Source of the DNA: Chlorokybus atmophyticus
Taxonomy: Eukaryota; Plantae; Mesostigma and Chlorokybus algae
Assembly: GCA_009103225.1 (NCBI GenBank)
Contig: RHPI01000008.1
Coordinates: 573,412 to 637,411 of the forward strand
Reading direction: 5' to 3'
Length of the DNA stretch: 64,000 nt
Position numbers and translations under genes: made by a program
In this document: piece by piece, positions 16,783-64,000 of the stretch
Position numbering within the stretch: the first letter of the stretch is position 1
Layout of the letters: the number at the start of each line of letters is the position of its first letter
Notes under the pieces: model-generated
The model's input: the letters and a program-made list of their open reading frames with translations, nothing else
Databases searched by the model: none
What the model was told of the DNA's origin: nothing

Positions 16783-16849
16783 CTAGCCAATCACCTTTGC
16801 TATTTTCATCTGCAGTAATGATGTTGTCCCCATTCCATTGATGAGTGTC

Positions 16850-25800: not shown

Positions 25801-28162
25801 CACTGGATAGCGCTGTCATGGTTCTGGAGAACGCAACGTCAGCAATGCCAACAGATGCATTTGCAAGCGACCCTGGTGTGGTAGCCAGTATCGAGCAGTT
25901 TCTGCAGCAAGTCCTGAGCATCCAGTACTCCAGCCCAATAGTAGCCGAGCAGCTGTGCCGCATACTAGACAGCTTTGGCAAGTACTACAAGCCAGGGCCG
26001 GCAATCCTGCCCCAGGTGATTAGCAAGCTATTTGACGTTTTTAGCACCATTCCAACTCCAACAGCACCACCTGCATCTACCAGCAAAGCGCGGCGTAGGG
26101 CACGCCAGCAGGCAGGCGCCTCTGTGCTGAAGATTTCTCTTGCCGCGGCAACTGTGCTCGCACCACATCTGGTCGCTTTCGCGGATGGCATCAGTACATT
26201 GCAACAGCAGGGCATACTTCAGGACGGTGATCACATAATGCTGCAAGAAGCCTTGCTGGTGATAGCATCAAAAGCTGGCGATACTGCGCAAAGCCAAGTC
26301 TTCAATCAGATTCTTGAACCGCTGCGACTGAGATGGACAGATCCTCATTGGCAGAGTTCATTGACAAGTGCACAAAGCTTTGTGGCTTTCTTAGCCCCTG
26401 CCCAGCTCAACTGTGAACAGCGTGCGTGGTTGTTTTCTGCTATGGCCATGTTGGAAAAGCTTCTAAAGAGGGCTGAGCCTGCAGCAGCCAAGCAGAGCGC
26501 TTCTCACCCCTTGTCACAGCACTTGCAGTGGATCCTGCCGCCACTCCTACAGCTGATAAAATGCCTTCATGAACTGTGGTCTCCACCGGTGCAACAACAG
26601 GTATGGCATTCCCGCACCTGACTCTGTGCCCTTGCAGTGTGTCATACAAGCAGTACCAATGCCAGCAGGACAACCAAAACAGCCTGCATTGCGTTGCCAT
26701 TGACTGTGCAGGTGCTACCAGCTGGGTATCAGGAAGCTCTAGACATAGGCCCCTTCGAAAAGTCTATGCTTGCTGGAAACACCCCAGCACAGGCCGTTGC
26801 TTCTGTCCCCGGCGGCGATCGCGAGGATACCGATAGTGGTGCAGTAGATGGTGAAGGTCCAGCTTCTCTGCGTAATTTTTTGAAGGGCATCCGGGAGTCG
26901 GCCTATCAAGTTGTTGGATTGTGCGCCACAAAGTTGCCGGCTTTTTATGAGCAGTCGAACATTGCCAACCTGTTGCCGACATGTTTATTCCACTGCTTTG
27001 AAGCAGTGGAAGCTCGGCATGTCAAGTCCTTTCTCAGGAACATAGTGGTTCCTTTCACAAAGCATTGCCCACCTCAGCTGCGCTCAACGTGGCTCACCCC
27101 TGTGTTGCACCCGACACTTGTCCACATGCACTCCAGGCTTACAGCAGCTTGGCAGCAACACACCGTTCCAGATGCTACAACAAAGGAACGCGGCACCCAG
27201 GAGTTGACTGCCGAAGTTGTCACTGACAAGTTGCTGCGTGACATGACCCGAGAGCACTGCGCACTTCTTGTGCTACTAACACAACCGCTACAAGCTTCCC
27301 AGAATGGTTGCAGCTCTCCAAGAGACACAGCGCCAGAAGTTTCAATGGGCGGTGCAGCAGACCAGTCGAGTCTTCTGTTTTATTTGCTTCAGCACGAAGC
27401 CATGGCAAGCGCCGCTATTCATACGGCAATCTCAGCGTTGAGCTGGCCAGACAGCGAGTCGGCACACAAAGCTGTGGCATTCTGCTCAGCTCTAACTACC
27501 GTTGCCGTAGGAGACGCTCGATTGCATGCAGTTGTTGGGGCAGAGGTGCTGCATGCTGCAATCAGTGCCCTTACGTTCGTCTCCAATCAGACCAACCAAA
27601 GCGATCTCATTGCACTGATCAGAGAGATATATGTCAAGCTTTCGCCCTGCACCTCAGCTCCAAGCCAGGTGAGTGTTGCCTTGTGAATGCAAGCAACCTG
27701 TTCACTTCAGCAGCCCGTACGTCATCACAGCACCTTTGCAGGTGCTACTGAGCTTGCCAACGGTCAACTCTGCTTCTTTGCAAAAGTTGCAGCAAGCGGT
27801 CAGCAGCACCGGCAGCGAAAAGGAGCAGCGGCAGCTGTTGAAACAACTCCTGCTAGCTGCCGGCGGGGACGACCTCAAGGCGCTTAGCTCTCCTGTGAAG
27901 TCCAGCACAATAAGCAATCTACCAGGTATGCCTATCCTCACATGTGTTTGCATGCAGACTGCACATTTGCGGCGATTGCTGCAAGCTTCAAACGTACAAT
28001 TGCATTGACTCTTTGATTTATCAGAGTAAGGCCTCATGATCCTGACTAGGAGTGTAACGGTTACATGCTGTCGTGCTTGCAGGTAGGACCATGGCACCAA
28101 AGCGCATCAATGCACCCAAAGACGATGACACTGGCATGTCACTGTCCAGCATTGGTCTATAG
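22860..28162 (+). CDS. HST: Exportin-5 / HASTY (multi-exon)
   Basis: LRWLPEDVTVHNEDLQGDRRRGLLFALTKALPQILPFLY...LEQHFAEAM...AYAEWAPV...FQNHACDFFK matches the HASTY Xpo1 domain as I recall it; later SLRNFLKGIRESAYQVVGL and EVVTDKLLRDMTRE; stop TAG 28160-28162. Confidence 0.95.
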
Positions 28163-39779: not shown

Positions 39780-41745
39780 CGACGGTATGCCGATATCCGA
39801 AGCCTGCTTCTTGGCTACAGCCTCTTAAACCACGCCATCTTCTCGCAAGCTGAACATCTGGCTAGATGCCCCCTGCCTCTTTGCAAACCACAGCCTTACC
39901 TCCAAGCCTCGGCGCACGAGAGAGGGACCGCGTCAACTAGCGCTGCAAGCATTATCGCTGGGCGGACGGCCTTCTTCATCACCGCAACCAGGGAGAGGAT
40001 AAAGAGGTACCCGCACTTCACTAATGCGAAGGCATCATCTCCACACTGCACACAGAGCTGAATCACTTTGGCGTGAGGCGCACCGTGAGCCTCGTTCGTG
40101 CAATACTGGTGGCACACTGGTTGTATACATAGGTTCGCATCTTTGTGGGCAACTGCTCGCAGTGTGACCTTGTCCGCGCTTGCCTTAACACTAGGAGTGT
40201 CACCCTGCAACCATTACCCATCGCTGGTATATTCTATCGTTGGAGCCTGAACATCCTCGGCAATCTGTCACCATCAACTAGAGGTAAAAAGTACATTCTA
40301 GTGATGATTGAGCACTTCTCGAAGTGGGTGGAGCTGGTACCCCTACCTGACAAAGGCAATAGGGGGGTAGCTCAAGCTTTCCTCAATTGCGTCATCAGCC
40401 ATTTCGGCTCATGCGCCGAGGTACTCACTAATCTAGGCTCAGAATTCAAAGGCAAGTTTGATATTTTGCTGGATCACGCCTACACCATCGGCGCACTTTT
40501 CGTGATCACGCTCAAGCCAACGGCCTCGCAGAGCGCGCTGTTGAAACCATTAAGAAAGCACTCCGCAAGTACATCGTCGAGCACAAAAACGCAGTTGGGA
40601 CATTTACCTGCTGTGGGCTGCCCTCGGCTATCGCCTCTCTAAGCAGGCAGCACTACGACAATATAGCCCCTACCAGCTGCTCTTCGGACGTAAGCCTCTT
40701 CTTGCGCTCCGCGCACACACCGAGGTGAAGCGTGCGCTGGACAACCTTGACAATCCTGACCGGATGCGTCAAAATTTATGTTGAGATGGACGCTAATAGC
40801 ATACACATGCACAAGTGCACACCACAACACTAGCGTCAGAAGACCATACAAGACCACCTATTGCCATCATGTCCACGGGTTTTATACCCGCCAGCTACAC
40901 ATGCTTCTACTCCAGAAGCTATTGCATCTAGCACACTCAACCATAACTTGCGCTCTAAATTGCTCCACGTAGCTAGATAAAAAAAATTGCCAACAAGCTA
41001 TAGCACACGCCAATAGTCAACTAACCACCGAGATACAATCATTCTACTACAGCGCCTGCAAGCCTCCAAACTCCTTACTCGCCGATGCGCCTGGAACCTT
41101 GTTGCGCCTGGACCTCTCGACTTGAGTTGCCTTTGACCTTCTGGCCGCTATTCCTATGCAGAGAGCAAGCTGATCGGCTGACCTAGATGTACGAATATCC
41201 TCAACAATCTAGTGGCCTGCGCTAAACTGTTTAAACATCTCATCCCCATGGCGTTGGGCAACTTGCGCACAGCCCAGCACCGCGACACGCACCGCTATGA
41301 GCGGGTGCGTAGCGGCTTCTACGAGCAGCATAGCCGCAGGTTTGAGATCGGTGACTTTGTCTACCGCATGATAAAGACTCAAGACACGCTGGACATCAGT
41401 GTTTGTCGAACCGTCTTCAAGGTCGTGAAGATGCTACCTTCAAGGGTAATGGATTTGCTGAGATAGGATAGCGTCCGTATGAAGGACAACATGAAGAATT
41501 GCGCACCTTGCCATATGCCACAGGTGATTGGGTTTGACGTCATCTAGCATCCTCGTTTTTCTCGCAACCTACGCTGTGAAGAAGGTGGCAGCGCCGATGA
41601 TGACGCAAAGATAATGCTCTGCGACGGGTGCAACAAGGGGATGCACTGCTACTGCTTGGACCCACCAAGAGCAAGGTGTCCGTGGAAGCCTATTGGTGTG
41701 ACGACTGCCGCGTCAACGGTCGTTTGCACTCCCCGCTAAGCTGAC
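39780..41745 (+). mobile_element. Degenerate Ty3/gypsy pol 3' part: integrase (H2C2 + rve) with C-terminal PHD finger
   Basis: LHTELNHFGVRRT...CSQCD, RWSLNILG...KYILVMIEHFSKWVELVPLPDK...EVLTNLGSEFKG, YSPYQLLFGR, then C..CEEGGSADDDAKIMLCDGCNKGMHCYCLDPP; stops and frameshifts; PPT-like agggggggа at ~41769. Confidence 0.85.
40779..41206 (-). mobile_element. Copia-family solo LTR (428 bp) inserted in the integrase
   Basis: TGTTGAG...CTCAACA ends; flanks ATTTA/ATCTA (4/5 TSD); removing it restores the frame RQNL-VACAKLF; reverse strand shares gcttgttgg and ctggcgggtataaaaccc with the other Copia LTRs. Confidence 0.85.
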
Positions 41746-41782: not shown

Positions 41783-42025
41783 TGGCTTGTTGACTTACAC
41801 CTAAAAGCATGTACACTAGCTCCAGGCACATGGTGACATCTTGCTACCATGCGTAGTAGGCCATAGTGCTCCAACATTCGATTTCACGACAGGGGGGTCA
41901 TACTTTCGTCCGCATCTTGCAGGAGCTGCCAACCTCAAGTACAATGGGCATCACGCCAACCTTACAACTCACACTCTGAGCAATATGCTTGTTCCACCTT
42001 ACCTTCGGGGACACCCGGCATAACA
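41783..42025 (+). mobile_element. Penelope-like element fragment, duplicate of 42555-42790
   Basis: tggcttgttgacttacacc...ttcggggacacccggc is closely similar to 42555-42790. Confidence 0.7.
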
Positions 42026-42121
42026 GCTGTCATGCCGCTCCGCCATAACTGCCCCACTTCATCATTTGACTACAGCCGACGCGCCGCCCGGGCTGTTGGC
42101 ATTTGCACCCTAGCTATAATT

Positions 42122-42495
42122 TGTAGGTGCCTAACAGTAGCACTGCTCCATAGTACGCTACTCGTAGGTACTTTATAGTCATTGACCAGTTAGGAATCTA
42201 TTCGGCTATATCGAAACTTGACGCACTGCTTTGTCCATGTCATGTTAGTAGCCGTTATCCTTGTTCGAACTAGTGCTGAACAGTTGTGCCTTGACTAGAC
42301 AGCTTGGTATAAGTAGCAATTTACATTTCTGTATGACTTGGTGAAACTGTGAGTGAAAACATTAAAAATAGACTGAGACTGTGAGACGACTGAGCTGTGG
42401 ACTCGCCGCCCCGGTTGCTAAAAATCTCTTATTGTGTGAGAAAGTGTGCATGTTCGTGTGCGCATTGCTTTGCATTGCCTGTGAGATCCTTAACA
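42122..42495 (+). mobile_element. Putative orphan LTR (TGT...ACA) followed by TGG
   Basis: tgtagg...ccttaaca, TATA-like ggtataag, and ctcgtaggtacttta resembling the chromovirus LTR; no TSD. Confidence 0.35.
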
Positions 42496-42554
42496 GTTGG
42501 AACATCCATCCGCTCATGCAAATGTCTATGTGATATAGCACTACCTCTAGTAGT

Positions 42555-45069
42555 GGCTTATTGACTTACACCGAAGAGCATGTACACTGGCTCCAGGCAC
42601 ACAGTGACATCCTGCTACCATGCGTAGGCCATGGTGCTCCGACATTCTATTTCACGACAAGGGGGGCATACTTTCGTCCTCATCTTGCAGATGCTGCCAA
42701 CCTCAAGTACTATGGGCATCACGCCAACCTTACAGCTTACACTCTCAGCAGTCTGTTCGAGTTTGCCTTACATTCGGGGACACCCGGCCCGACAGGGCCA
42801 CTATCCACAAACATTGCAGCGAACTTGGAAAGACCTGCAGGTGGAAGTTTGATGCCACTCGGGAAGGTCCCTATGCAACCGTTCGTCACTGGCAACGACA
42901 ACAACAAGACCAAACCAACAGCAAGAAGAGTTCAAGTGTGCTTGCAGTACACATCCATACGCTGAGCTGGTGCACCCGACATTGCAGCATGTCATGTTGT
43001 GTGATTGTAGCATTGCTAGTTTGCACATCTTGCAGACATTGCATATTTCTAGTACTAAGTTTCGCATGCCAATGAAAGCAGATGTTTGCGGTTGTATGCC
43101 ATCAGTACGTAAAGGCATATAGGAATTCGCAGAAGCTCAGGAAATTAAACAACGACAATTAAGACTACTGCAGCCTTGCGTGCAAGCTGTAATGGCAGCA
43201 GTGTTGTCCAGAGCCACTGCTTGCATGCACTGGTTGCCTACCACCAATTTACAGGCTTACAAGATGGATACTGTAGCTCAAGCTGCAGTGAAAGAGCTAC
43301 AACGCCTTCTCATTATCACGGAAGTAGATAAGTGTGCAAGCACTTTTGTTGTTGTGTGCAAGACTTTCCATTTGCATCTCATGCGTGCAGAATTGCAAAC
43401 TAATACTGATCAGCTCCAAAGTGACAGCTGGCAGAACACTGTACTACGCCACACACAATACAACTCTTAGCATGACTTCGTGACTTCATAACCTGGGTTG
43501 GTGTGTCTACCTCACTTGTACCTAACCATCAGGTTACACAAGACGCCACCAGCACCTCGCTTCATTGTAGCAGCCTACCAAACCACTTTAACGGATGCTA
43601 ATGACTGGATGGCGAGGGTTTACAATGCTATGGCTTACGTGGTTAATGTTTTATGGCAAGATGCTGTAGGCCTACCAGCAGCCAGTTTGATTATCAACGT
43701 TTCAATGGCGGTCAAAAGGCTGCAGCATCACATCACATCAACACTACGAGGTCACGCACCGACAAGAAACAACCTCTCACCCTACACACTTGCGACTTCA
43801 CCACACTCTACACCAAGCTGCAGCAGCAAAACCTCACCGACCGTATGCGCGGCTTGTTGGACAAGTGTCTACCAAGGTGCACTCTCTCCACGTTAACGTT
43901 TACAAGGGAGAAGTCAACCTTGAGTGGGCTTGTGGCAGTACTGTTAATTACACGGAAGGCACAACACGCACTTTCACTGCCGTGCAATTACATGACTTGC
44001 TCAAGTTTTCGTTGGCTAACTTGTTCGTGCAAAAAAGTGCAAACAGCGTATACAACGATTGGAATTCCTATGGGGAATTCAGCAGGGGTTTACTTAGCTA
44101 ATAATACGCTCTTTCCTTAAAAGCTGAACTTCATCGAAAGATTGGGGCGTACGGTGATCCTGTGCTGTTGCAACGCTTTTCTCCGTGCATTTTGCGCTAT
44201 GTGGATGATCCATCTGTGGTTGAGGTGCCTGAGTTCCAGCAGGCATTGTACTTGTCACCCACAACATCAGCAGGGGGCAATACTCACAGGCAATGCTCAC
44301 TGTCGTTCAGTCTGCCACTGCTGTGCCTTTCTTGGATTTATGCGTCCTACAGATGAAGGACATAGGCCTTTGCACAAAGGTGTACATCACGAGACGTGAC
44401 CCGGCCTATGTGAACATCTCCGTGCGTAGGGCACCTCACCCTTATTCCAACATTGCACGAATAGCCAAACATAAATAGAGAGTAGTTGTATCGCAGTGCA
44501 TTTGCTTTTAACGCATTTGTACATGTCGCTCCCATTGTATCAGAGATGGTGCTATTGTTGGGGGACATCAGTCGAGGTGGCCATACTAAGGAGCAATTGT
44601 TGCGAAGGTTGCGTGGGAAGCTGTGGAGCATGCAAGGCATGGCATACGACACGAATTATAAGTAGTTGTACAATGGTGGTGTATAGGTTAGAGAAGGCAG
44701 CAATCCTGGCCAGCACAGGGTGACGGACGTGAGCCGATATTCCAACAAGCAGCACACGACATCGACAATAGATAAGTACGGGTAAGTGATGGATAAGTGA
44801 TTATGGGGAGCAAATTGCCCGCATACATGTTGAGTTGATGCACAGCTCACAGCAATTCCATAAACACTCCCTCGCGGTAGTCTGCAGGTGCTTCCTTTGC
44901 TGCTTGCTGCTGCCCCTTCCCCCTTCCCTCTGCCCACACTCTTCCCCCAGTCTATAGCTAGTGCACTTAGCTATAGCTTAGTGGGGCCCCCCACCCCGTT
45001 GTTTTTGCCTTGCTTGTGCTGTATTATCATGCTTTGCTGTGTCGTGCTTGCTTGCTTGACTGATTGGCC
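42555..45069 (+). mobile_element. Degenerate Penelope-like element (Naiad/Chlamys type): CxC linker, RT and 3' UTR
   Basis: KCACSTHPY...HVMLCD...STKFR (CAC at 42937-42945), ITEVDKCASTFVVVCK, LPHLYLTIRLHKTPPAPRFIV, TCDFTTLYTKL, GIPMG, LRYVDD, PFLDL; several stops and frameshifts. Confidence 0.85.
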
Positions 45070-47310: not shown

Positions 47311-48709
47311 TGTAACGGGAGCAACAATAATAGGGGTGTTACTGCTACCTAAATAACACATTCTGTATGAATAAGTATCTAAATATGCTTATTTATACCT
47401 CTTTTCTACGGTTCCTTCTTATTGAAGGCTATAATGCTTTATCATAGCTTAAATAAGTCCTAATGGGTGTAGAACCGCTTATTCAAGCCTATTTGGTGTC
47501 ACATTTGATAAAATGTGATTACTATCTCGTTAGGTACCTTATGATAGGTATCTTTCGATAGGTACCTTATCGGAGCTGTGATTGGCTCACGCTAGATTTC
47601 CTAACTACCCTATCTGTAGGGTTGATGTCTAGTTGTGAGTTAATTATCGAGAGGTATATAGTTGATATACTCTTGATATAAAAGGTCACATCAAATTGAT
47701 GTGGGGACTTTCAGTTTTCTGCTCAGTGGCGGCCACGCCGTTGAAAGGCTTGTCATAGGCGGTGTGGGTGTTGGGGTAGAGGATTGAAGGGGCATCACCG
47801 GCGACGGTGGTGCTGTTACATTGGTATCCAGGATCTGGGGGGGTGACGTGGGTACTTATAGGGGGCGGCGACCTGCTTTCGGCCAATCAGAAGGCGGCGG
47901 CGGCGGCCTCCTATTCGTCCACGCAGCCCAAGCTTGAAGCTAGCTTCCCTGCGCTATCTCCACGTTGAAGCCACCCATCAAAGAGGCGGCCTCTCCATGT
48001 GTGAGGTACCATCACATACGTCGGTGACTTGCCTGCTTGCCAGGTGCTTGTCAGATGCACGTGTGTACTTTCATGCACATCATCATCAGTGACTTATCAG
48101 TGCATGAGTGCGGACTGCTGGTGCCATCACTGCTTGTCACACTTAGTGCACTATCATTGCTTGCAATGATTGCCTGTCGTTGCATGCGGTGAGTGCTTGT
48201 CATTATGCTTGCCAATGCATGTCACAGTTGGTCACTGTACGGCTTGCCTGTTGCATGCCTGTGGCTTGCCTGTTGCATGCCTGTGACGTACCTGTGACCA
48301 GCTGCCAGCTGCTTTTTCGGGTCGCTTGACTCCGGTCCGTAAGTTCCAAACCAAGCTGTTCCCAAACCCTCCCCCTCTGGCTTCGGCCTGAAGATTGGGA
48401 CTTGGTTAGATTAGCTTTGGGGAGATAGTAAGACATTCTGTTCCCAAACACTGTTAGTCTGAAAACCTCCCCCTCTGGCTTCGGCCTGGAGATTGGGACT
48501 TGGTTGAGGACAACACAGGGTTAGGACATTCTGGTCCCATTCACACTTGTTCTGTTTGGTAACACTCCAGATCCAACCTTTTCTGTTTTGGGACTGGTTT
48601 GGACTATGTTTAAGACTTTTACAACTTGGGGTCATTTTGATCCTCTCGTTAAACCTGGTCCATTGGTGAGTTTCTCACCGTTCCATTTTGCCTGTTTTGC
48701 AGACAAATG

Positions 48710-51700
48710 GAAGAGAACTCGGTGCCCACCTCAAAGGGGGAAAGCTCGCAAAAAGCAATTATCCCGTGAGGAGGAGTTTCCATCTATGGAGGATATTCCA
48801 ACCCGGATGATGCACCTGATGAGTCTCATGCTGCTAAGGATGGCTTGGTGGAACCAGACGGGCCACCACCACCACCATCATTCGTGCAGTCTGAAATCTC
48901 AATTCGCTTGACAAAACAGGATTTGATGGGCCACTTTCTTGGCACCTATGATGAGGAGCCTCGTGAGGCGATTGTCTCGCTCGTCAACTTCCTCTTTAAT
49001 GTGGCGGAAAAGCTCTCAAAGCTCACCACTTTTATGGGGCGAGATTGGGAGGGATCGATGGGTGAAAGCAAACGTGTTTTGAACATAACCGAGCGCCTTC
49101 AACGCTCTGACAGTGGTCCACCTGTTCAGGCGCTTGCTCGACCTGCCGAGTTTGTTCCCAACAAACAAGCGGCAATTTTCGACTGGCTCGTGAAGCTGAA
49201 ACACTATGTCAACTCCCTTCACATTTCTGAGGAGGGCAAGTTGCGTGTAGCTAAGTTGCTGATCCCAAACGATGCCTTGGCAGAGTGGTACCGCCGTAAG
49301 CAACGGGATACGAACCTCGGGCGGGAAGTGAATCAGTTGTGCTCTTGTATGGAGCAGCGCTATGGTGGCGCAGATCCTGCTCAGATTGCTCGCAACCAGC
49401 TGCACAATCTGCGTCAGAACGGGCGTCCGGTTCAGCAGTATATCCAGGATTTTCAATTGTTTGTCAGCAGGATCATTGCAGGCAAACTACCCATTAGTGA
49501 TGCCGATCAGCTGGATATGTTCATGCGGGGCTTGGACATAGATCTCGTGCAGCATGTGGCCGTCAACCCCGCGAGTTTGCAAGAGTGGGCCTCGACGAAT
49601 TTACCAATGCTGATGCACATGGTTGCTGCTGTGGACTGTGTGAAGCGCTCTCACGCAAACATGCAAACCACAGCAAAAGAGGCAGTCCCGGTTTCAGCTG
49701 CAAAGCGCCCGGCCACTGACAACAAACCTTATGTGAAAAAGGCGAAAACATCTTAGTGTTGAAGGTATTACATGGGTGATGCTTGTGTCCGGTCAGCTTG
49801 CCCTTCAAACAGGAGTCGAGGGTCGAAGGTACCAGGAAGAAGCGCGTGGACTCCAGACTTAGCAAGACGGTCGAGTCATGACGGACTCCGGACCAGGCTG
49901 CTTGGTAGAGCCTTGGGAGAAATCGCGTAGCTTTGTGAATACGTAAGTTTAGCAGGCGTGGCTTAGCTTGTTGGAAAGCTCTGGTTGTGAGCTAGACAGC
50001 GTAGCTTATAGAATAGCAATCGGCTGAGTATAGCGCACGCGGTGCTTGCCAATGTAGACGTGTGTAGAGACTGGCGGGGTATAAAGCCCAGACTTGTTGC
50101 AATGAAAAAAAAGAGGTCACGATGTAGCATGTGTGCGGATGCTATGGCGGCAGTAGCAGTCATGCTCTTGTGTTGATGTTGTTGGCGTGTCACTTGCACG
50201 TGTGTATGTCAACAGGTTATGGGCCCACACATGCTTGTGTAGGTTGATGGAGTGTGTTACAATTGTATGTGTAGCTGTAGTTGCTTTGTGGTAGTGTGGG
50301 GTTGTGAGGTCTGTGAGCAGAGAGGGCAACCAACCAAGGCCACCAGCATGGACAGCTTGAAGATTGCGATTGGACTACTGGACGTTGACGACTACAACAC
50401 TTGGAGTGTGAAGATGGAGCTACTACTGGCCCACAAGGAGATCTTTTGGTGACTGAAGAAGAGTACGTGAAGTACTTGGAAGAGGAGGCGTCCTTGATAC
50501 GTGGGAGCTGAAGATGTCAGCTCGTGTTGCTGAGTGCGAGGAATACTTGGTGGAGCGTGGTGAAGCGCTTTAAGGAATGCGAGAGGCAACCCGTGGTAAG
50601 CACGTTGATGTGCTTGGTGGAAGGAAGGGGAGCAGATGGCAACCCTTGAGGTCGAGCACGGTGGAGTGTTTGATGGACCTTCCGAGAAGGGGAGCGAGGG
50701 CAGTCCTTGGTGAAGCACGGTAAAGTGCTTGGTACTTTGGTTGAAGCATGTGGAGTGCTTGGCTGAAGGTGCATGCGAGGAAGCGTGATGAGCATCCTGG
50801 AAGCATGATCACTTGGAAGCTGAACATGGAGCATCCTGGAGGTGTGAAGCTTGGAGGCTATACGCAGAAGCGTGTGGACGTGGACATGAAGATGGCCATG
50901 GTGTGCGCAAGGTTGCTACATTGACAAGGGTGGTTGAGGATGGAGTTGCAAGATACCACAAGGTCATGAGTAACAAGGAGGCACAAGTAGGTTGCGATTG
51001 CGAAGCCCGTGGGAGCTGCAAGTGGTGGAAAGCAAGTTGACTAGAGGAGTCATGGGCTGATACCAGAGACAGAGGCACTGTCAACGAGGACAGATGCAGC
51101 GGGTGCATGAAGGCAACATGTATGTACAGCAAGGAGCAAGGTTGGTGGTCAACCATGACGCTCGAGTTGCTGTGGAAGTGAATGACTTCAAGATCGTCCA
51201 TGAGAAGCATGGAGGCATGAGAAAAACAGGTGAAGGCTTGCGTGAGAAGCGGTGTGCGTGTGTATTGGAGGAGCTGATGTTGAAGGACAAGCTGCCCGCG
51301 TGGGAGTGTTGAAGGTATTACATGGGTGATGCTTGTGTCCGGTCAGCTTGCCCTTCAAACAGGAGTCGAGGGTCGAAGGTACCAGGAAGAAGCGCGTGGA
51401 CTCCAGACTTAGCAAGACGGTCGAGTCATGACGGACTCCGGACCAGGCTGCTTGGTAGAGCCTTGGGAGAAATCGCGTAGCTTTGTGAATACGTAAGCTT
51501 AGCAGGCGTGGCTTAGCTTGTTGAAAAGCTCTGGTTGTGAGCTAGACAGCGTAGCTTATAGAATAGCAATCGGCTGAGTATAGCGCACGCGGTGCTTGCC
51601 AATGTAGACGTGTGTAGAGACTGGCGGGGTATAAAGCCCAGACTTGTTGCAATGAAAAAAAAGAGGTCACGATGTAGCATGTGTGCGGACGCTATGGCGG

Positions 51701-51901
51701 AAGTAGCAGTCATGCTCTTGTGTTGATGTTGTTGGCGTGTCACTTGCACGTGCGTATGTCAACACTCAGCCTGCTGGCCCCGACAACGCGGCCAAATCCA
51801 CTATCACTTGCAACTTCTGCAAGAAGACAGGTCATGGGGAGGCCAAATGCTATGCAAAGCAGAATGCACAAAAGGCCAAGCAGAAGAAGGACAAGAAATA
51901 G
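48710..51901 (+). pseudogene. Chromovirus gag, interrupted by the Copia insertion at 49757-51764
   Basis: ORF 48845..49756 (QIARNQLHNLRQNGRPVQQYIQDF) continues after the insertion as SQPAGPDN...CNFCKKTGHGEAKC (zinc knuckle); stop TAG 51899-51901. Confidence 0.9.
49757..51764 (+). mobile_element. Non-autonomous Copia derivative (2008 bp): 458-bp LTRs, half-tRNA-iMet PBS, vestigial gag start
   Basis: LTRs 49757-50214 and 51307-51764 (TGTTGA...TCAACA, 5 differences by eye); PBS GGTTATGGGCCCAC at 50215; MDSLKIAIGLLDVDDYNTWSVKMELLL; flanks CTTAG/CTCAG. Confidence 0.93.
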
Positions 51902-51950
51902 GAATTGTCCGTGGTTGGTAACTTAGTCGAGCAGAACGACTTTTTAAACT

Positions 51951-54900
51951 TTGTATTTCTTGATAAAGTTTTCTCTCTTTGTGATGTATCAGATGTATGG
52001 ACTGCTAATGAGCACACCACCTGTGTTGACAAATGCAAACGGTTGTGTTTTAATTAATATTCCATTCTCTGAATTGGTAACTGCTGTTAAGCCCTTACAC
52101 GAGTTGCAATTACAACATGCTGTCACTGCATGTGTAGTTATCCCTCAATATCATGGCTCGTGGTCGCGATTGTTGAAAGGGGGAGAAGTAATTATGCAAC
52201 TCTCACGCAAAGATACAGGAACTTCACCGTTACAAGTGATTTTTATCAAGTCTGCTACCAATCACGGCACTTCGACATTAGCTACATTTGATGGTCACTC
52301 AGTGCCTCTCAAATGGAGATTTGAGAGTCAACTTATGGGTACACCATGTACAGCATGGATCGATACTGGTGCAAACCATAACTTTGTTGAACATGCTTGG
52401 GTGAAACGTAATAACATACCTTTCACACCAACCACGTCGTATATACGTGCTGCTGGTTCCACCCTTAATGCAATTGGGGAGGTAAAGGGGCGTTTTTTTA
52501 TTAACAGCCACAAAACTCGACCAACTTTTATCGTGGTGGATATAGGTATCCCCGGGGTGGATGTTGTTTTGGGTGAACAGTGGCACACCGAAGCAGGTTT
52601 GCAATTGGACTCTCGAGCAAATACGTGCACCCTTCGTAAGGGTAAACGTAAGGTAACGTTAATCGCACCTGTACTCGCACGTGTTGCTCGCGACAATGTT
52701 CCGCTCCTCTCTGCTATGCAACTGAAACGTTGCATGCGCAAACGTGAGGAAGTATATTTGATGCACTTACGACAGGTAGAGACACCTATTGAACAGGCCG
52801 ACTCTGACCCTGTGGTGTAATCACTTACAGAACAATACGCAGATGTATTTCAGGATGAACTCCCGGAGTTGCCTCCTGATAGAAACATACCATTATACCA
52901 TTCCGTTGGAAGAGGGGGCAAAGCCACCTTGGCGGCCTATTTATAGACTAAGTCCCTTAGAACACGCGAAAATGGAAAATCAGCTTAAAAAGTTATTGGA
53001 CAAAGGTTTAATAACAAAGAGCATATCTCCTTTTGGTGCACCGATTTTGTTTGTGCCCAAAAAGAATGGCAAGCTACGCATGTGTATTGATTGATTACCG
53101 TGCGTTGAACAAGGTAACTGTGAAAAACAGATACCCTTTGCCTCGGATTGATAATTTGTTTGATAAGCTGTCAGGTGCAACAGTGTTCAGCACACTGAAT
53201 TGATCGGTGGTTATCATCAAATCAAAATCCACCCGTCGGATATACAAAATACTGCATTTTGCACCCCACTAGGACACTTTGAGTATAAAGTGTTACCATC
53301 TGAGTTAATAAATGCACTAGCTACATTTCAGACAGCAATGAACACGGTATTTGCTGATAAATTGTACAAGTTTGTACTGGTATATCTAGACGATATTATT
53401 GTGTTCAGCAAAACCCGGGAGGACCACCACAGGCATGTGGAATTGGGTCTAGCTAAGTTACACAAAAACAAATTCTATGCCACCCTATCCAAATGCAACT
53501 TTGCAAAGGATGAACTGCTCTTTTTAGGGCATGTGATTGGCAAAGAAGGATTGAAACCAGATCCTCAAAAGGTGTGTGCGGTGAAGGATTGGCCACCACC
53601 CAAGGATGTACATCAGTTACGTGCTTTCTTAGGGCTAGCCAATTATTTCCGCAAGTTCATGCGAGCATACTCTAGCATGGCAAATCCTTTAACATCTTTA
53701 CTAAGAAAGGATGTTACATTTGTATGAACGGAGGCACACGAGGTTGCTTTGACACGCATTAAAGATGCATTAACACAAGCCCCTGTGTTAGCCTTCCCCG
53801 ACCACACCAAGCCTTTTGTGGTGATCAGTGATGCTTCCACCATTGGGTGTGGGGCAGTCCTTCTACAGGATGACAGATCATGTGCATATGAAAGCAAAAA
53901 GTTCATTCCTGCTGAACGTAATTACACAACCACTGAGCAGGAATTGCTCAGGGTGGTGCACGCGCTGCGCACATGGCGTTGCTACGTGGAAGGTGTGGAG
54001 TTTTCAGTTATTACTGATCACAACCCGCTCACATTCTTTCATACGCAACAAAATTTGTCGAGGCGGCAAGCTAGGTGGAATGAATTCATTTCTCGTTTCA
54101 CTTTCACTTGGCAATACTGTCCGGGTCGCACCAATGTGGCGGATCCACTAAGTCGTAGCCCTGCTCTTTTGGCACTTACGCGCTCTCGTAGTACGCGTAA
54201 TGTACAACAGCCTGAAGATCCTTTCCTGAAGGAGGTGTCCACAGGTTATAACTTAGATGATTGGTTTAGCAGTCAAACCAACTTGCAACAGCTTACTGCT
54301 GTTAGCAATCTGTGGTATAAAGGGGAGCAGTTGGCAATTCCCAACTCGGGCGACTTGCGTAAGCAATGCTTACATTTAGTACATGACCCGCCATATGCTG
54401 GGCATTTGGGGAAACACAAAACACTCAAAGCCGCGCAACAGTTATACTGGTGGCCGTCAATGTCAGCTGATGTGGATTAATATGTTCGCACATGTGACGT
54501 GTGTCAACGTAATAGGCCACTACGACAAAAACAAGCGGGATTGCTTAAACCATTGGCAATTTCAGAACAAAAGTGGGATAGTGTCAGTATGGATCTGATT
54601 ACTGACCTACCTGAAACAGCAGCCAAACACACTGCTATTGTGGTTTTTGCCCCGTGTTGCACAACTGTGAGTGCACGGGACTTGGCACATTTATTTGTGT
54701 CCACGGTCTTTCGAGTTCACGGTGTACCGCATGAACTTATCACAGATCACAGATCGTGATCCTCGGTTTGTCTCCAAGTTTTGGAGAGAAGTTTGTGAAT
54801 TGTTGGGGGTAAAACAAAACATGATGACTGCGCTCCATTCGCAAACGGACAGACAAACTGAGCGAGCAAATCAAATACTGGAAGAAATGCTTCGCCACTA

Positions 54901-55582
54901 TGTGGCTCCTAACCATGCTGCTTGGGAGGTACTTGCCTATGGCAGAGTTCGCTATAAACAACGCGTGGCAGGAAAGTGTAAAGGAAACCCCATTTTTCTT
55001 GAATTATGGGATTCGCTTGAACACACCAGCGTCATTGCATGTACCTCGCAATGCCCTGACTGTACCAGCGGCAAAGGAATTTGCCACTGATATGCAAGAA
55101 ATTTGGCTCGAGCCAAGCTGTGTCTGTCAAAAGCACAGGACAGGCAAAAAGCTTATGCTGATACATATCGAAGAATGGCCACTTTCGATGTCGGCGATAA
55201 AGTTTTGCTTAACGCAAAGAACTTAACCATCAAAGGTACGGGTGCTCGCAAGTTGCTGCCCCGATGGTTGGGTCCTTTCTCTATCACTGATAGAGTTGGT
55301 ACCCACGCTTATAGACTGCAATTGCCCCCAAGTGTGCGTATACACAACGTGTTCCATGTGAACTTGCTGAAACCTTACCGCTCAGACGGTAGAACTCAGC
55401 CTCCACCACCACCAGTAGAGGTGGACAGCGAGCTCGAATACGAGGTGGAAGCTATATTGAACCATAAGCTAAATAGTCGAGGACGCGCAACTCGCTATTT
55501 GGTGAAATGGAAAGGGTATGGCCCAGAACATAACAGTTGGGAGCCCGATAGGCATCTTACGCACTGCCGCGAGTTGCTTTGA
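51951..55582 (+). pseudogene. Chromovirus pol: Dam-like segment, protease, RT, RNase H, integrase, chromodomain (frameshifted)
   Basis: AWIDTGANHNF, KPPWRPIYRLS, LRMCIDYRALN, VYLDDIIVFS, VISDASTIGCGAVL, HDPPYAGHLG, SMDLITDLP, LLPRWLGPF, EYEVEAILNHK...YLVKWKGYGPEHNSWEP. Confidence 0.95.
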
Positions 55583-56246
55583 GCTTATTGGGATTCACGT
55601 CCTGTCCAATAACCTGTGGGCTTGGTTTTATGACAGACTGGCAGTGCAGTTTCATTACCACCCTGTTATTTCCTGCTATGTCACTGGTTACAAGTACTCG
55701 AAATCAAGCATGATCAACTTGAGTGCAACGAGGACGTGGAAAACCTAAGTGGAGGGGAATGTAACGGGAGCAATAATAATAGGGGTATTATTGCTACCTA
55801 AATAACACATTCTGCATGAATAAGTACCTAAATATGCTTATTTATACGGTTCCTTGCTTATTAAAGACTATGATGCTTTATCATAGCTTAAATAAGTCCC
55901 AATGGGTGTAGAACCGCTTATTCAAGCCTATTTAGTGTCGCATTTGATAAAATGTGATCACTATCTCGTTAGGTACCTTATCGATAGGTACCTTATTTGA
56001 GCTGTGATTGGCTCACGCTAGATTTCCTAACTACCCTATCTGTAGGGTCAATGTCTAGTTGTGAAATAATTATCGAGAGGCATATAGTTGATATACTCTT
56101 GATATAAATGGTCACATCAAACTGATGTGGGGACTTTCAGTTCTTTGCTCAGTGGCGGCCACGCCGTTGAAAGGCTTGTCATAGGCGGTGTGGGTGTTGG
56201 GGTAGAGGATTCAAGGGGCATCACCGGCGACGGTGGTGCTGTTACA

Positions 56247-58789: not shown

Positions 58790-59206
58790 TGTTGAAGGTA
58801 TTCCATTAGTGATGCTTGTATCCGGTCAGGTCGCCCTCCACAGGAGTCGAGAGTCGAAGGTATGTTGGGCTGAGCACATGGACTCCGGACTTATCAAGGC
58901 GGTCGACCTAGGACGGACTCTGGACCAGATGCTGAGTAGTAGAGCGTTGGGAGAAACCGCGTAGCTTTGTGAATTTGTAAGCTTAGCAGTCGTGGCTTAG
59001 CTTGTTGCAAAGCTCTAATTGTGAGTTAGACAGTAATTTAGAGAGCGTCCAAAGGCTGAATATAGCGCACGCGATGCTCGCGAATGCAGACGTGTGTAAA
59101 AACTGGCGGGGTATAAAACCCATGGAGTTGTGGCATCAATGGCAGTAGTAGTCATGCTCTTGTATTGATGTTGTTGGTGAGTCACTTGCACGTGTGTATG
59201 TCAACA
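58790..59206 (+). mobile_element. Copia-family solo LTR (417 bp) without TSD
   Basis: TGTTGAAGG...GTCAACA, clearly similar to 49757-50214; flanks CTGCC/CGTCG do not match. Confidence 0.88.
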
Positions 59207-59863
59207 CGTCGTGCACCCTTCTCTCTTGATTAAAGCCCAGAGGTGAATGTGTTTGCAGTATTTGTATCCAGTGGCGCTCAATGTGACGAGCCACCTTGTA
59301 CCACTCGTTTGCTGTCATTTGGCGCATAGGAATATGTTCAATCGGTAAAATACCCCAGCTGTGTTCATCTCTGTGCCCCATATCCTTCTCCAGCGAGGTA
59401 GCCCTTGCTGCATCTGCCATCGATGCATGCTGTTTGACCCGCTCACAAGCGTTATTGAAGGTGAGGCCAATCCAATATTTTGTGGTGCCATCCACGGGAT
59501 ATACCACATAGATGATATAAGTGTTATCACCTAGATTTAACGCAAAACGCAAAAACAACTTTTCAAGACGATTCTCATGGATTTTGCGGCGAATTGGCAA
59601 GTTGGCACCATAGTAGGTTTGCTTGATTGTTGAAAGGATGCTCCGCCAGTATGCTGCGCTTTCCTCTCGTTCAGAAGCAAAGGAAGAGGCTTATGACTGT
59701 TTCGACCCTAATACTTGAGCATCCTTGGCGCGATCCACCCCCTCCAACCCGCACCCTAGCGCTCAGTAAGTGCGATAATGCTGGCCCCCGCCCTTGCAAT
59801 GTAGCAAACATAAGCCCAACCGACGATCTTGCCACCGTAAACTCACGCACACAAAAGCCCCAT

Positions 59864-60175
59864 TGTAGGGCTTGTAGAACCCGCATATGATGTGTGGTGC
59901 GAAGGGCTGCAAGCAACTGTTAAAATAGCCGCCTGTTTTAAAATTCTGGCATTTAATGGTGCCGTTAAATGCCAATATCCACATCCCATGCTCTGTAGGG
60001 CTTGTAAGACCCTCGTAGGGTTGTGTGGTGCGAAGGGCTGCAGGCAATTTGTAACTATCCGGCTATTTTGAGATACCGGCATTTAACGGCGCCGTTCAAT
60101 GCCAGTATCCACATCCCATTCTGTAGGGCTTGTAAGACCCTCGTAGGTTGTGTGGTGCGAAGGGCTATTGGCAAT
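59864..60175. repeat. ~2.4 tandem units of ~129 bp, each with a 26-bp near-palindrome
   Basis: Units start at 59864, 59994 and 60122 (tgtagggcttgt); palindromes GGCATTTAAY-GGYGCC-GTTMAATGCC at 59948-59973 and 60078-60103. Confidence 0.9.
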
Positions 60176-61078
60176 TTTTTGAAGCCAGTGTCATGTATGA
60201 GTTGTTTGTGACATGGCTACGCATAGTGGCGGCATGCGCGGCGATGGCGATAATAGCCGTTGAATGCCAGCATCCATGTCTCACATAATACTTAGTAGTT
60301 ACAAGCACATCAATTAGAAGTTGGTCACGTCACTAGGCAGAAGCTAACAAAGAGCGCAAATCCACATAAATAACAACTTGCACGACAAGTTTGCCATACG
60401 TAAACCACCGCAGAAGAGATTGGTGGGTGGTGAGCTCATGGAGTAGGAGGCAAAGCTATGCTAGGTGAATACCACCTTCAGACCGCAAAGGTCACAGAGT
60501 GCATAGCAGCCAGTCAATGCATGCATGCATGCGTGGTGGGTTACCACTCGTTGTACCACATATAGCGCAGATTGCACGCATTGATTGGGAGGATGCGTGA
60601 GTGATCACCACTGATCGGACCACAAAGGTCCAAGATCGCATTCAGCGCAATGCACCTCATATCAAGGCTTTCCCACCAGTGCCAGCATCCACGTCACATG
60701 CAGTAGGTAGCAGTGCGCAAGCACATCTTCTGCCAAGGCAAATCAAGCCAGCACAGCATTTAGCAATTGCGTACGGCTCGCGGGTATCATCTTCAAGCTG
60801 ACACCATGCAGAATAGTTCTGCATGGTGTCAGCTTGTAGATGATACCGCATGCATGCATTCTCGCGAATTTACGGAGATTTGAAGAATTGGCACTATAGT
60901 GAGTTCGCTTGAGTGTCGCAAGGATGCTTTGTCCGCTGAGAAGCGGAAACAAAGGTTTGTGATTGCTGCGACCCCAGCACCTGGTCGTCCTGGTCATTGT
61001 CTACCCTATCCATCCCGCGCACTAGTGCTTACCAAGTGCGCTAATGCTGGGCCCCCGCCCTTACCAATGAATACCAAC

Positions 61079-61167
61079 TGTCACGAATTGGGATAAATTG
61101 TGACAGACCTCACTCATGATAGTGTCTTTTACTACCATAGCCTAGTGGTCGGGCCCCAATTGTTACA
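61079..61167 (+). mobile_element. 89-bp solo LTR of the TRIM, perfect 5-bp TSD CCAAC
   Basis: TGTCAC...GTTACA; CCAAC at 61074-61078 and 61168-61172; reverse complement of 63700-63788 with one substitution. Confidence 0.96.
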
Positions 61168-61558
61168 CCAACCAAGCAGACAACTTAGGCACAGCAAGAT
61201 AGCGCAAGCAAGCAGATATCCCCACGCAAAAGCGTGAGCTCGAGGTTGCCCTTGAGGCTTGCCCCAAGAGCTGCCAGGGGCGATGGGAGCGGACCACCAC
61301 CCAAAGGTACGGGCTAGGCGTCAACTAGAACTCCGGGCCGAAAGCATAGTACACAACAGATGGATTAAGGCCAATCAGTCAAGCAAGCAAGCACGACACA
61401 GCAAAGCTGGATAATACAGCACAAGCAACGGGGTCGGGGGCCCCACCTAAGCTCTAGCTAAGTGCACTAGCTATAGACCGGGGGAGGAGTGTGGGCAGAG
61501 GGAAGGGGGAAGGAGCAGCAGCAAGCAGCAAAGACAGCACCTGCAGAGCACCGCGGGG

Positions 61559-62100
61559 TGTTGAGAGTATTCCTACATACGATCAGCATCGACCCTCCAC
61601 ACAGGAGTAGAAGGTCGTAAGGACGAGCACTAGGTCCGGACTTAGCAAGATGGCATCGTCGGACCAGACTCCGGACTCCAGACTGGAGCCTTACTAACTG
61701 CTTCGTATCTCCGCGTATACTTACTCATATTAGGCGTGTAAGAGCTTGTTGGAAAGCTCTGGTTGTAAGAAAGACAACACAACTTAGAGCGCGTCAAAGG
61801 GCTGAGTATAGCTTAGTATAGCTTACGCAGTGCTTGCAAATGTAGACGTGTGTGTAACTGGCTGGTATAAGAACCAGCGGACAACTTGTAATAGATGAAT
61901 GTGATGTGACTTGTGTATGCTCTGGTGGCGGTAGCTCTGTCCGTGTGTATCCATGCTTGCCTCAGCTACATGTGCATGCTAGTCCTTCAACAGGTTATGG
62001 GCCCACACTACGCTTGAGGAGTGTGAGACTAGCTTGTGTGCATAGTAGTTCTACACTACGGTAGCTTGTTGGTAGCAGAGCCTTGGGTGTCAACTGCAAG
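61559..62100 (+). mobile_element. Copia-family 5' LTR (61559-61992) with half-tRNA PBS; runs into an assembly gap (N 62101-62216)
   Basis: TGTTGAG...TTCAACA followed by GGTTATGGGCCCAC at 61993. Confidence 0.9.
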
Positions 62101-62216: not shown

Positions 62217-63278
62217 TTGTACTGAACCAAAACACAGGTGCCATGTGAAGAACTGCAACGAAGCAGCTTTTCAAGTCTGCGCGACGTGTCCAAACAGCCT
62301 CTGTCGACGGCACGCTGTGGGTAGCATGGTTGAGGTTACGTGCTCGCGATGCGCTGCATACGAAGAAGGTGGTGCTCCAGCGCAGCTCCCAAGGGAGAGC
62401 CTTGCTCGTCGTTCTCTGCCGGGCAGTTGCGGTAGGGTTTCACAACCTGTGCAGAGTGGGCTTCAACACGTTGAAGAGAGTGGGGATGAGGCTAACAATG
62501 GTAAGCTGCTGTGTGCTTGAGCTTGTTGATTTGCGTTGTGGTTCTTGCCCAATTGAACCATTTATGGCTGCAGAGGCAGTCATGATGGAAGTTGACGATG
62601 AAGACGAAGAGGGCTGTAATCAGCAACCCACGACGGCTGCGGCAGTTGTAGACCTCGTGGGCAGCGATGATGATATCATGGTGCTGGACGATCCAGTCAG
62701 CAACCCGCAGCCGTCAACACCGCAGCCACTGTTCATTTACCCTAGTGCAAGTGCACGTGATGCGGTGCCAGTGCTTGAAACGGACACGAGGTTGCTGGAT
62801 GGCAGACAAGAGCTCAATGACACCATCCTCCACTTCTTTTGCAGGTATGTGATTTGTTGCGTCTGTGTTATTCGTGTATCTCATATGTACGTGGGATGCA
62901 CATGCAGATACAAGGAAGAGGAAATCTTAGACAGAGCAGATGGCATTCAGGTGAAGCTGTTCCACCCGCATTTCTACACCAAGATCGTGCGCTGCCATAG
63001 ACAAAATGACTGGCACACGAGCAATCACAGGTTAGACAGCTGGGAGAGTGATCCGTTTGCCAAGAGGTTGCTGGGAGTGATTGTCAACCCAGACACGCGG
63101 TGAGAATAAGCGCCAAGAATATCTTGATGAATTGCTGCTGTATTTGCAAACTGGAATTATTTTGATTGTCCACAGGACTCACTGGAGTCTGCTGCTTGTG
63201 TGCAATCCTGGAGGCCAACTTGGAAGTGACACGCCGCCTTTACTCGTCCATCTCGACTCCCTTGGCCTGCATCGCGAC
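62217..63278 (+). CDS. Ulp1/C48 SUMO-protease-like gene with N-terminal Cys/His zinc finger, interrupted by the TRIM array
   Basis: CHVKNC...CATCPNSLCRRH...CSRC; VVDLVGSDDDIMVLDD (SIM-like); LFIYP...LDGRQELNDTILHFF, VKLFHPHFYTKI, HWSLLLVCNPG...LVHLDSL; GT-AG introns. Confidence 0.8.
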
Positions 63279-63315
63279 TGTAACAATTGGGGCCCGACCA
63301 CTAGGCTAAGGTAGT

Positions 63316-63319
63316 AAAA
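63316..63319 (-). terminator. Candidate Pol III T4 terminator in the TRIM LTR (second copy at 63740-63737)
   Basis: The only run of 4 or more T on the - strand of the 421-bp unit. Confidence 0.55.
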
Positions 63320-63664
63320 GACACTACCATGAGTGAGGTCTGTCACAATTTATCCCAATTCGTGACATTCCTCCCCAATTTAACCCATGAGTTCCTCATA
63401 ATCCAATGAGGCACTAGCCCACGTCGCCGTTTTCGCGGCCGCACCACAATCGGTCGGTGCCCGCGGCCTGTTGGATCCGGCCAACGAACGGTCATGACCG
63501 ACCGAACGGCCATCCTCACCGCGCGACCTGCCATCGCAGCGCGACCGCTCACGCGGCCTTAGGTTGAACTGGCTCGGCGCGCAGGTCGTGATCCCGCGCC
63601 CAGCCTAGGGCAAGCCGCCCCAAATGTTTTTGTTGTTGCCTTGGATCTGCCTCAGTCCCCTACG

Positions 63665-63729
63665 GGAATTGAACCTGAGACGTCAAGCTCCGAAACCATT
63701 GTAACAATTGGGGCCCGACCACTAGGCTA
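63665..63729 (-). promoter_or_regulatory. Type-2 Pol III promoter: A box TAGCCTAGTGG (63729-63719) and B box GGTTCAATTCC (63675-63665)
   Basis: Both match the consensus (TRGCNNARYGG; GGTTCRANNCC); starts are 54 nt apart. Confidence 0.75.
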
Positions 63730-64000
63730 TGGTAGTAAAAGACACTACCATGAGTGAGGTCTGTCACAATTTATCCCAATTCGTGACATTCCTCCCCAAT
63801 TTAACCCATGAGTTCCTCATAATCCAATGAGGCACTAGCCCACGTCGCCGTTTTCGCGGCCGCACCACAATCGGTCGGTGCCCGCGGCCTGTTGGATCCG
63901 GCCAACGAACGGTCATGACCGACCGAACGGCCATCCTCACCGCGCGACCTGCCATCGCAGCGCGACCGCTCACGCGGCCTTAGGTTGAACTGGCTCGGCG

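Follow-up and report, generated by a model that had tools for sequence, protein, structure and literature searches.

A 421-nt repeat at the end of a 64,000-nucleotide stretch of the alga Chlorokybus atmophyticus (assembly GCA_009103225.1, contig RHPI01000008.1, positions 573,412 to 637,411; this whole 64-kb stretch is the window, to which all counts and motif tallies below refer) is a non-autonomous, gene-less miniature long terminal repeat (LTR) retrotransposon, that is, a terminal-repeat retrotransposon in miniature (TRIM), arranged in tandem. With somewhat more belief than doubt, we lean towards the view that this TRIM has a split promoter for RNA polymerase III (pol III) and makes from it an end-paired RNA of about 421 nt, running from position 63736 to the next run of four T residues (T4), while a helper supplies its proteins. 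The putative unit-length RNA with paired ends would be a good fit to the anatomy of the element.

From 64000 down to 63279 on the minus strand the sequence repeats itself directly every 421 nt, and its overlapping parts differ at one base only. Each period is made up of an 89-bp LTR (TGTCAC...TGTTACA) and a 332-nt internal region, and a single element measures 510 bp (89 + 332 + 89). The boundaries of LTR copy A match those of a solo LTR about 2 kb from the array and those of the array itself, the terminus of which falls exactly between ...TGTTACA and GTCGC (63279). On each side of the solo LTR stands the 5-bp direct repeat CCAAC (61074-61078 and 61168-61172). The internal region opens with A-TGGTTTCGGAGC, which puts TGG one base past the LTR and provides, with aTGGTTTCGGAGC, the primer-binding site (PBS) expected of a TRIM at that place. 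Because a TG...CA LTR, a PBS, an abutting polypurine tract (PPT), a 5-bp duplication and a solo LTR are found together, the repeat follows the grammar of LTR retrotransposons; because it spans 510 bp and has no open reading frame (ORF) with relatives, it is a TRIM. Indeed, short TG...CA direct repeats, a non-coding interior, a PBS, a PPT and a target duplication of 4-5 bp are all present, and the sole ORF, of 69 aa, has no relatives by exact look-up and homology search. The visible arrangement, ...internal-LTR-internal-LTR, is a multi-LTR tandem form with its upstream end beyond the window, and a sensitive blastn search with the unit finds three LTRs and two internal regions in the window and nothing more. 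An earlier note on this DNA, made from the letters alone, had described an LTR element in tandem, and the shared 89-bp boundaries, the CCAAC duplication, the PBS and the PPT bear this out.

The case for pol III begins with two promoter boxes. The A box, within the LTR, agrees with TRGCNNAGTGG at 11 of 11 positions; both other LTRs, copy B (63298-63308) and the solo copy, have it too. The B box, in the internal region, fits GGTTCRANNCC. The two boxes start 54 nt apart, within the 30-60 nt looked for in a type 2 gene, both in the sense orientation of the element, and such a pair at tRNA-like spacing occurs once in the whole 64 kb. With the first sense T4 421 nt past the putative start, the layout of a type 2 pol III gene is thus present at the sequence level. 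Since the B box sits in the internal region, only 5' or internal LTRs have a complete promoter, whereas solo LTRs and the one that closes the array are left with the A box. With the A box on the LTR side and the B box past the PBS, the border between LTR and PBS falls in the would-be anticodon region of the tRNA-like module. A TATA-like element, GATAAAT, lies at -39 to -33 relative to LTR position 53. The tRNA-Ala(AGC) gene of the window (16710-16782, plus strand) has AATATAG at -36 to -30, a like distance in this single case, and its first downstream T run is a T4, 21 nt on.

The second line of evidence is the geometry of a hairpin in the LTR. In the numbering of LTR copy A (63788..63700), A38-T45 (ATGGTAGT) form the 5' arm, G46-T52 the loop and A53-T60 (ACTACCAT) the 3' arm, with the sequence and coordinates (63751..63729) that the earlier note had given. 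The loop ends in the T4, and A53, the base straight after it, is position 63736. The following T4 copy is at 63316-63319 (63319..63316 on the minus strand), so that 63736..63316 is 421 nt, as had been proposed. The same note had claimed a tRNA-type internal promoter in sense orientation with a T4 directly before the tRNA-like +1. The perfect A box, the B box and the uniqueness of their pairing agree with the first part and the end of the T4 at -1 with the second. Taking 63736 for the tRNA +1 position holds as regards its distance of 7 nt from the A box, but this is the position of a mature 5' end and not necessarily that of a pol III start. Likewise, the T4 in the loop is indeed the only T run of at least four on the sense strand of the unit, and the opposite strand has one T4 and one T5 as the note had said, but no significance attaches to a single T4, since 87% of shuffles have no more than one. 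The hairpin is less readily obtained by chance: a perfect 8-bp stem with a loop of 3-10 nt arises in 0.5% of LTR shuffles and in 3.5% of unit shuffles. Exactly four T residues stand at the joint in all three LTR copies, and this joint between T4 and A53 is the exact point at which the 3' end of the RNA would join its 5' end if there were no terminal repeat (R) region.

In tRNA terms, the arms of the hairpin read as positions 1-7 (ACUACCA) and 66-72 (UGGUAGU), the latter followed by G as discriminator, UC as trailer and UUUU as terminator. Judged by sequence, the arms look like the two halves of a tRNA acceptor stem, the LTR appearing to hold a tRNA-like 3' end directly before the 5' end. ARAGORN at default settings calls a cloverleaf once the 5' arm (the acceptor-3'-like strand) is moved behind the T arm; its acceptor has 7 bp and its D stem 4 bp, while the anticodon and T stems are imperfect. 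The program called none of 200 controls in which the arms were kept and the middle was shuffled, and none of 200 in which the 3' strand was shuffled. An Rfam scan at the gathering threshold, extended to E<=10 for the segment 63200-64000, detected neither 5S, Y, vault or 7SL RNA nor any ribozyme. The weak Rfam matches Ref68, mir-936 and GlsR24 were rejected as far under threshold.

Folding predictions are consistent with a structured unit-length RNA. The RNA 63736..63316 has a predicted energy of -194.4 kcal/mol (z = -6.07), against -154.8 kcal/mol (z = -3.6) for the reverse strand. For its first 8 nt, pairing with AUGGUAGU close to the 3' end is predicted at probabilities of 0.85-1.0, a GUCUUUU tail remaining, in keeping with the earlier claim that the 5' and 3' ends of the unit RNA pair. 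In a transcript that continues through the LTR the local hairpin is predicted instead (probability ~1.0), and in one that starts at LTR position 38 the local 5' hairpin (0.73) prevails over the terminal stem (0.27). The terminal stem is not independent evidence, because it follows directly from the hairpin.

Table 1. Features of the TRIM array, the solo LTR and the gypsy element, in window coordinates
Feature	Position	Strand	Remarks
Ty3/gypsy LTR retrotransposon	47311..56246	+	gag, protease, reverse transcriptase, RNase H and integrase fragments
Solo LTR	61079..61167	+	exactly 89 bp, TGTCAC to TGTTACA; G41>A
LTR copy B	63279..63367	-	final LTR of array; A59>T, one hairpin pair lost
Hairpin in LTR copy B	63308-63330	-	one mismatch
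Polypurine tract GGGGAGGAA	63368..63376	-	abuts 5' end of LTR copy B
Complete internal region	63368..63699	-	332 nt, G+C-rich, highly structured
B box GGTTCAATTCC	63665..63675	-	internal region nt 25-35, downstream of primer site; +62 in tRNA-like numbering
Primer-binding-site candidate TGGTTTCGGAGC	63687..63698	-	one base past LTR
LTR copy A	63700..63788	-	89 bp, TGTCACGAATT...CCAATTGTTACA; sole copy with perfect hairpin
A box TAGCCTAGTGG	63719..63729	-	LTR 60-70; starts at T60 (63729), 7 nt after A53
Hairpin ATGGTAGT / GTCTTTT / ACTACCAT	63729..63751	-	perfect 8-bp stem
T4, candidate pol III terminator	63737..63740	-	T49-52 of LTR
TATA-like GATAAAT	63769..63775	-	LTR 14-20
Polypurine tract GGGGAGGAA, second copy	63789-63797	-	abuts LTR copy A
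Second, upstream internal region	63789..64000	-	3' 212 nt, cut by window end; 0/212 mismatches to complete copy

We infer from this layout that pol III would initiate at or within a few nt of 63736, where T52/A53 offers a pyrimidine/purine step, and that most polymerases would terminate at the next T4. The product would be a La-type RNA of about 421 nt with pairing ends, beginning with the acceptor-5'-like strand from 63736 and ending with the acceptor-3'-like strand, G, UC and UUUU. Its replication proteins would be supplied by an autonomous LTR element, for which the gypsy family of the window is the candidate. A start at 63736 and a stop at the T4 make LTR 1-52 the 3' unique region (U3) and LTR 53-89 the 5' unique region (U5), and leave an R of nil. 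The joint between T4 and A53, together with the complementary arms, is what an R-less history predicts and would be coincidental under other models.

How the first DNA strand would then be transferred is a matter of ranking. We put first the reading through of the T4, with homology provided by LTR 53-89 or, in arrays, by the whole unit: an RNA extended past the T4 of the following LTR has two copies of LTR 53-89 (37 nt), and this segment can act as R. In arrays such read-through would give a whole unit of redundancy and, worked through the standard scheme, a dimer-length RNA could yield LTR-internal-LTR without the first jump. Second would come an end-to-end jump, or one guided by U-tract micro-homology, with no R, and third a start a few nt upstream with a very short R. 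An upstream start would put the T4 among the first twelve or so bases transcribed. The options listed in the earlier note (end-to-end clamping, T4 read-through in arrays and a start about 15 nt upstream) were in this respect incomplete, the 37-nt R that arises by read-through of the T4 in the 3' LTR having been overlooked. Two further ideas were rejected: self-priming by the 5' end of the RNA, too weak with the 5 bp available (ACCAU/AUGGU), and derivation of the B box from read-through into a tRNA primer, since the box is in sense and not antisense orientation.

Several observations weigh against the pol III reading as a whole. The start of pol III on tRNA genes is usually a few nt upstream of the mature +1, and a T4 is a weak terminator in some eukaryotes. 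No tRNA match is obtained for the element from Rfam even at E<=10 (63200-64000), ARAGORN calls nothing in the natural sequence, and the strict A-box pattern by itself is found four further times in the window. When arms and both boxes were kept and the rest was shuffled, ARAGORN called 20 of 200 controls (10%); the tRNA-likeness is thus weak beyond boxes and arms. The comparison also has to be drawn from just three LTR copies and 1.6 internal copies, all nearly identical. The hairpin is perfect in only one of the three LTRs, A59>T in copy B and G41>A in the solo LTR each breaking a pair and neither being compensated. The three LTRs differ at no other site, and the chance that both changes should hit the 16 positions of the hairpin arms (63308-63330, minus strand; 61116-61138, plus strand) is about 3%; since the copies are inert, the changes reveal little about selection. 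The PBS matches neither that of the gypsy element nor any tRNA tried. Finally, the clamp activity reported for reverse transcriptases bridges 2-nt overlaps and makes use of untemplated additions, but only where the overlap includes a G or a C, so that the A:U-only overlap available here would be a poor clamp.

The boldest option, raised in the earlier note, is that replication is strictly R-less, the 421-nt RNA itself being the template and the reverse transcriptase jumping end to end onto the 3' U-tract with the aid of the stem, which would make the LTR a U3 (1-52) joined to a U5 (53-89). Among the models considered it predicts most directly that terminator and start abut and that the two 8-mers pair, and the acceptor-like reading of the arms is consistent with it, as is the ability of reverse transcriptases to cross 2-nt overlaps and to jump after untemplated addition. 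However, the 3' end of the cDNA, ATGGTAGT, would have the same sense as AUGGUAGU of the RNA, and the stem would provide proximity rather than annealing. The want of a G or C in the overlap tells against the clamp here too, and a slippery joint should vary, whereas exactly four T are found at all three joints (a tiny sample). We know of no R-less LTR element, and on balance we consider this alternative unlikely.

It is possible instead that a short R exists because transcription, by pol III or from GATAAAT by pol II, starts in the 5' arm, 5-15 nt upstream of 63736, ignores the T4 close to the promoter and ends at that of the following LTR, which would yield an R of 5-15 nt including the U-tract. 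tRNA genes normally have 5' leaders, the TATA-like element would set a start near LTR 41-47, and the local 5' hairpin predicted for a transcript from LTR 38 accords with such a start. The 18-nt terminal duplication reported for Cassandra RNA offers a parallel. A T4 at +4 to +12 should nonetheless abort many transcripts, and the coincidence of the arm after the T4 with tRNA positions 1-8 is left unexplained; a short R of this kind seems to us quite improbable.

Quite doubtful, too, is the idea that the boxes are a relic or due to chance, and that we are dealing with an ordinary TRIM, made into RNA by pol II or by transcription running in from neighbouring genes, in which neither the hairpin nor the T4 helps to set the RNA ends. 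The failure of tRNA models to match, the chance occurrence of strict A boxes elsewhere, the unremarkable T4 count and the position of the array inside a possible gene on the other strand would all be as expected. Against it stand the A and B boxes at the right spacing and in sense orientation, a pairing unique in the window, the rarity of the hairpin among shuffles, and the small size of an 89-bp LTR, in which a pol II promoter, a start and a poly(A) signal would find little room. TRIMs of the pol III kind moreover form an established class. Very improbable is the remaining explanation that there is no retroelement at all but tandem pol III genes or a satellite, with the 89-bp piece as a DNA transposon like a miniature inverted-repeat transposable element: the 14-nt imperfect inverted LTR ends (TGTCACGAATTGGG / CCCCAATTGTTACA) with the 5-bp duplication and the single array seen would suit it, but the spacer has TGG one base in and a purine run at its end, the array stops exactly at a repeat boundary, and termini and PPT resemble those of the gypsy element.

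On the other strand, an ORF at 62330-63278 (plus strand) runs straight into the array end at 63279. It has a weak match to Ulp1-type Peptidase_C48 (E 0.007, under the Pfam cut-off) with the motif HWSLL...LDSLG, and a 62-nt intron-like gap, GTATGT...CAG. The TRIM array appears to have inserted into this possible gene.

Among described elements the nearest relatives in design are the Helenus TRIMs, which have a tRNA-like sequence in the LTR and are grouped with Cassandra (5S) and Ajax as 'TRIMp3' (Kojima, 2024; PMC10886601). Pol III transcription is unproven for Helenus too, and the published Helenus LTRs are of 104-323 bp (PMC10886601). We scored the 17 consensus LTRs of the accompanying data file (PMC10886601) for boxes and T runs. 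In 13 of the 17 both boxes are in the LTR, and the first run of at least four T follows the B box at 15-19 nt and precedes the LTR end by 6-38 nt. A T run past the B box would give a tRNA-sized R and require that the T run of the 5' LTR be read through. LTR-11_DR has no T4. The paddlefish Helenus LTR, considered as a precedent, has a T4 upstream of the B box, but inside the tRNA-like part, and is not a clear one. The Chlorokybus element has no sequence match in the published set. Like Helenus, it is a tiny gene-less LTR element with a PBS, a PPT and a 5-bp duplication (as in fungal and plant Helenus), sense A and B boxes in a sequence unlikely to be a working tRNA, solo LTRs and tandem forms, and its PBS is identical at 11 of 12 positions to that of Selaginella Helenus-1_SMo (TGGTATCGGAGC). 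Unlike Helenus, its LTR of 89 bp is below the minimum of 104, its B box lies outside the LTR and beyond the PBS rather than with the A box in the LTR as the definition of Helenus has it, and its T4 is immediately 5' of the tRNA-like +1 and not after the tRNA-like part.

Cassandra provides a second comparison. Its RNA is reported to have a terminal duplication of 18 nt only; about 20% of the intact copies in pear are multi-LTR tandems. Cereals and ferns have long Cassandra arrays, and the Helenus LTR-11_DR is likewise recorded in arrays. Such multi-LTR arrays are attributed to recombination between LTRs or to template switching and, since these account for them elsewhere, arrays alone are no argument for an R-less mechanism. 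The Chlorokybus element shares with Cassandra the tandem arrays, frequent in the latter, and would share a promoter and terminator for pol III in an LTR element, a highly structured RNA and a very short terminal RNA duplication (reported as 18 nt in Cassandra). It differs in that the 5S-type (type 1) promoter is wholly in the Cassandra LTR whereas the tRNA-type promoter is split here, in lacking a 5S match (Rfam, E<=10), and in that Cassandra LTRs are of about 270 bp or more and Cassandra is confined to vascular plants.

More distant systems share single traits. tRNA-derived short interspersed elements (SINE2) have an internal A/B promoter, pol III termination at T runs and a length of a few hundred nt, but they lack LTRs, PBS and PPT and rely on target-primed reverse transcription by long interspersed elements with variable duplications, unlike the LTR boundaries and 5-bp duplication found here. 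Retrozymes are likewise non-autonomous LTR elements with tandem forms, and their unit-length RNA begins and ends within the LTR with no terminal redundancy, as that of the TRIM would; the TRIM has no hammerhead or other self-cleaving ribozyme (Rfam, E<=10), and its RNA ends would come from pol III start and stop rather than from cleavage and ligation. With Y RNA, vault RNA and pre-tRNA the predicted terminal stem and the 3' GUCUUUU tail are common features, but there is no similarity in sequence or model, and the predicted RNA is 421 nt long and lies within a mobile element. With moderate confidence, and on structural grounds, we would place the element functionally with the pol III TRIMs (Helenus/Cassandra, 'TRIMp3'), as a different structural variant. 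The earlier assertion that each transfer option is unusual for an LTR element loses force beside Cassandra, Helenus and Ajax, the 18-nt duplication reported for Cassandra and the known tandem forms.

The gypsy element of Table 1 may possibly belong to the family that supplies the TRIM with replication proteins. Its LTRs, of about 490-510 bp and 94-95% identical in aligned blocks, end in TGTAAC...TGTTACA, and it has a PPT, GGAGGGGAA, a 5-bp duplication, GCAGG, and TGG one base past the LTR, with tTGGTATCCAGGA as PBS. The likeness to the TRIM is limited to termini, PPT and target duplication: the gypsy primer site (TGGTATCCAGGA) differs from that of the TRIM, and sensitive blastn against the window finds no internal similarity between the two. 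Because of these two differences it is a candidate helper and not a proven one. The gypsy domains are spread over several separate ORFs, with the reading frame broken. Nested in this element, between gag and protease, is a non-autonomous LTR element of about 2 kb (49757-51764, plus strand), the 458-bp LTRs of which (TGTTGAAGG...GTCAACA) share about 99% identity. For PBS it has GGTTATGGGCCC, of the copia type complementary to the anticodon arm of initiator tRNA-Met, as in most fungal Helenus. LTR pieces related to it occupy 58931-59218 and 61675-62010; the second has this PBS again, at 61993, adjoining the assembly gap.

Further copies of the TRIM were sought elsewhere. An LTR 27-mer had no match in viral contigs, and scans of prokaryotic genome contigs gave no copy; the one match of a 20-mer among metagenome contigs was rejected as a chance match in unrelated AT-rich DNA. 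Exact look-up of nine ORFs of the window found none on record.

Other repeats and genes are found in the window. A 130-bp tandem repeat at 59864-60177 (2.4 copies, 84% matches) has units that contain the palindrome GGCATTTAACGGCGCCGTTAAATGCC, and 600 bp past it, at 60783-60847, is a near-perfect palindrome with 31-nt arms and a 3-nt loop. The segments 44934-45000 and 61420-61480 (both plus strand) are mutual reverse complements, about 85% alike by eye, and one has a chance A-box match; they are probably another dispersed repeat family, adjoining the solo LTR. An integrase-core fragment at 40145-40642 (plus strand; Pfam rve E 1.5e-6, under the cut-off) and a pair of direct repeats at 41783-42755 (about 200 bp each, 770 bp apart, 89-91% identical) are remains of further retroelements. 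An exportin-5 gene at 25614-27686 (plus strand) comprises two long ORFs a few bases apart (Pfam E 1e-53 and 1e-61), for which no relative was found at E<=1e-10 in a large protein collection. An A+T-rich island spans 16000-20000 (G+C 0.38-0.44, window average ~0.51). The tRNA-Ala gene and the primer sites of initiator-Met type indicate no more than a eukaryote, and they resemble plant sequences.

For annotation, the TRIM means that tRNA-like boxes such as these mark neither tRNA genes nor SINEs. The textbook view is that LTR elements and retroviruses require R at both ends of their RNA for the first strand transfer. The pol III TRIMs were named as a class only in 2024, and their RNA ends and route of replication have hardly been studied. 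The Chlorokybus element poses the question of replication without R sharply, since its terminator abuts its start and its promoter is rebuilt only at 5' LTRs. Perhaps such elements tolerate the absence of R, perhaps they make do with a few U residues, or perhaps they depend on read-through of the terminator. There is a small chance that the genomic RNA is a tRNA-like pol III transcript without terminal redundancy, and that the LTR arises from an oligo-U 3' end joined to the 5' end while an acceptor-like stem holds the ends together. If this were true, the TRIM would be the first LTR element to replicate without an R region, and only its 5' LTRs would fire.

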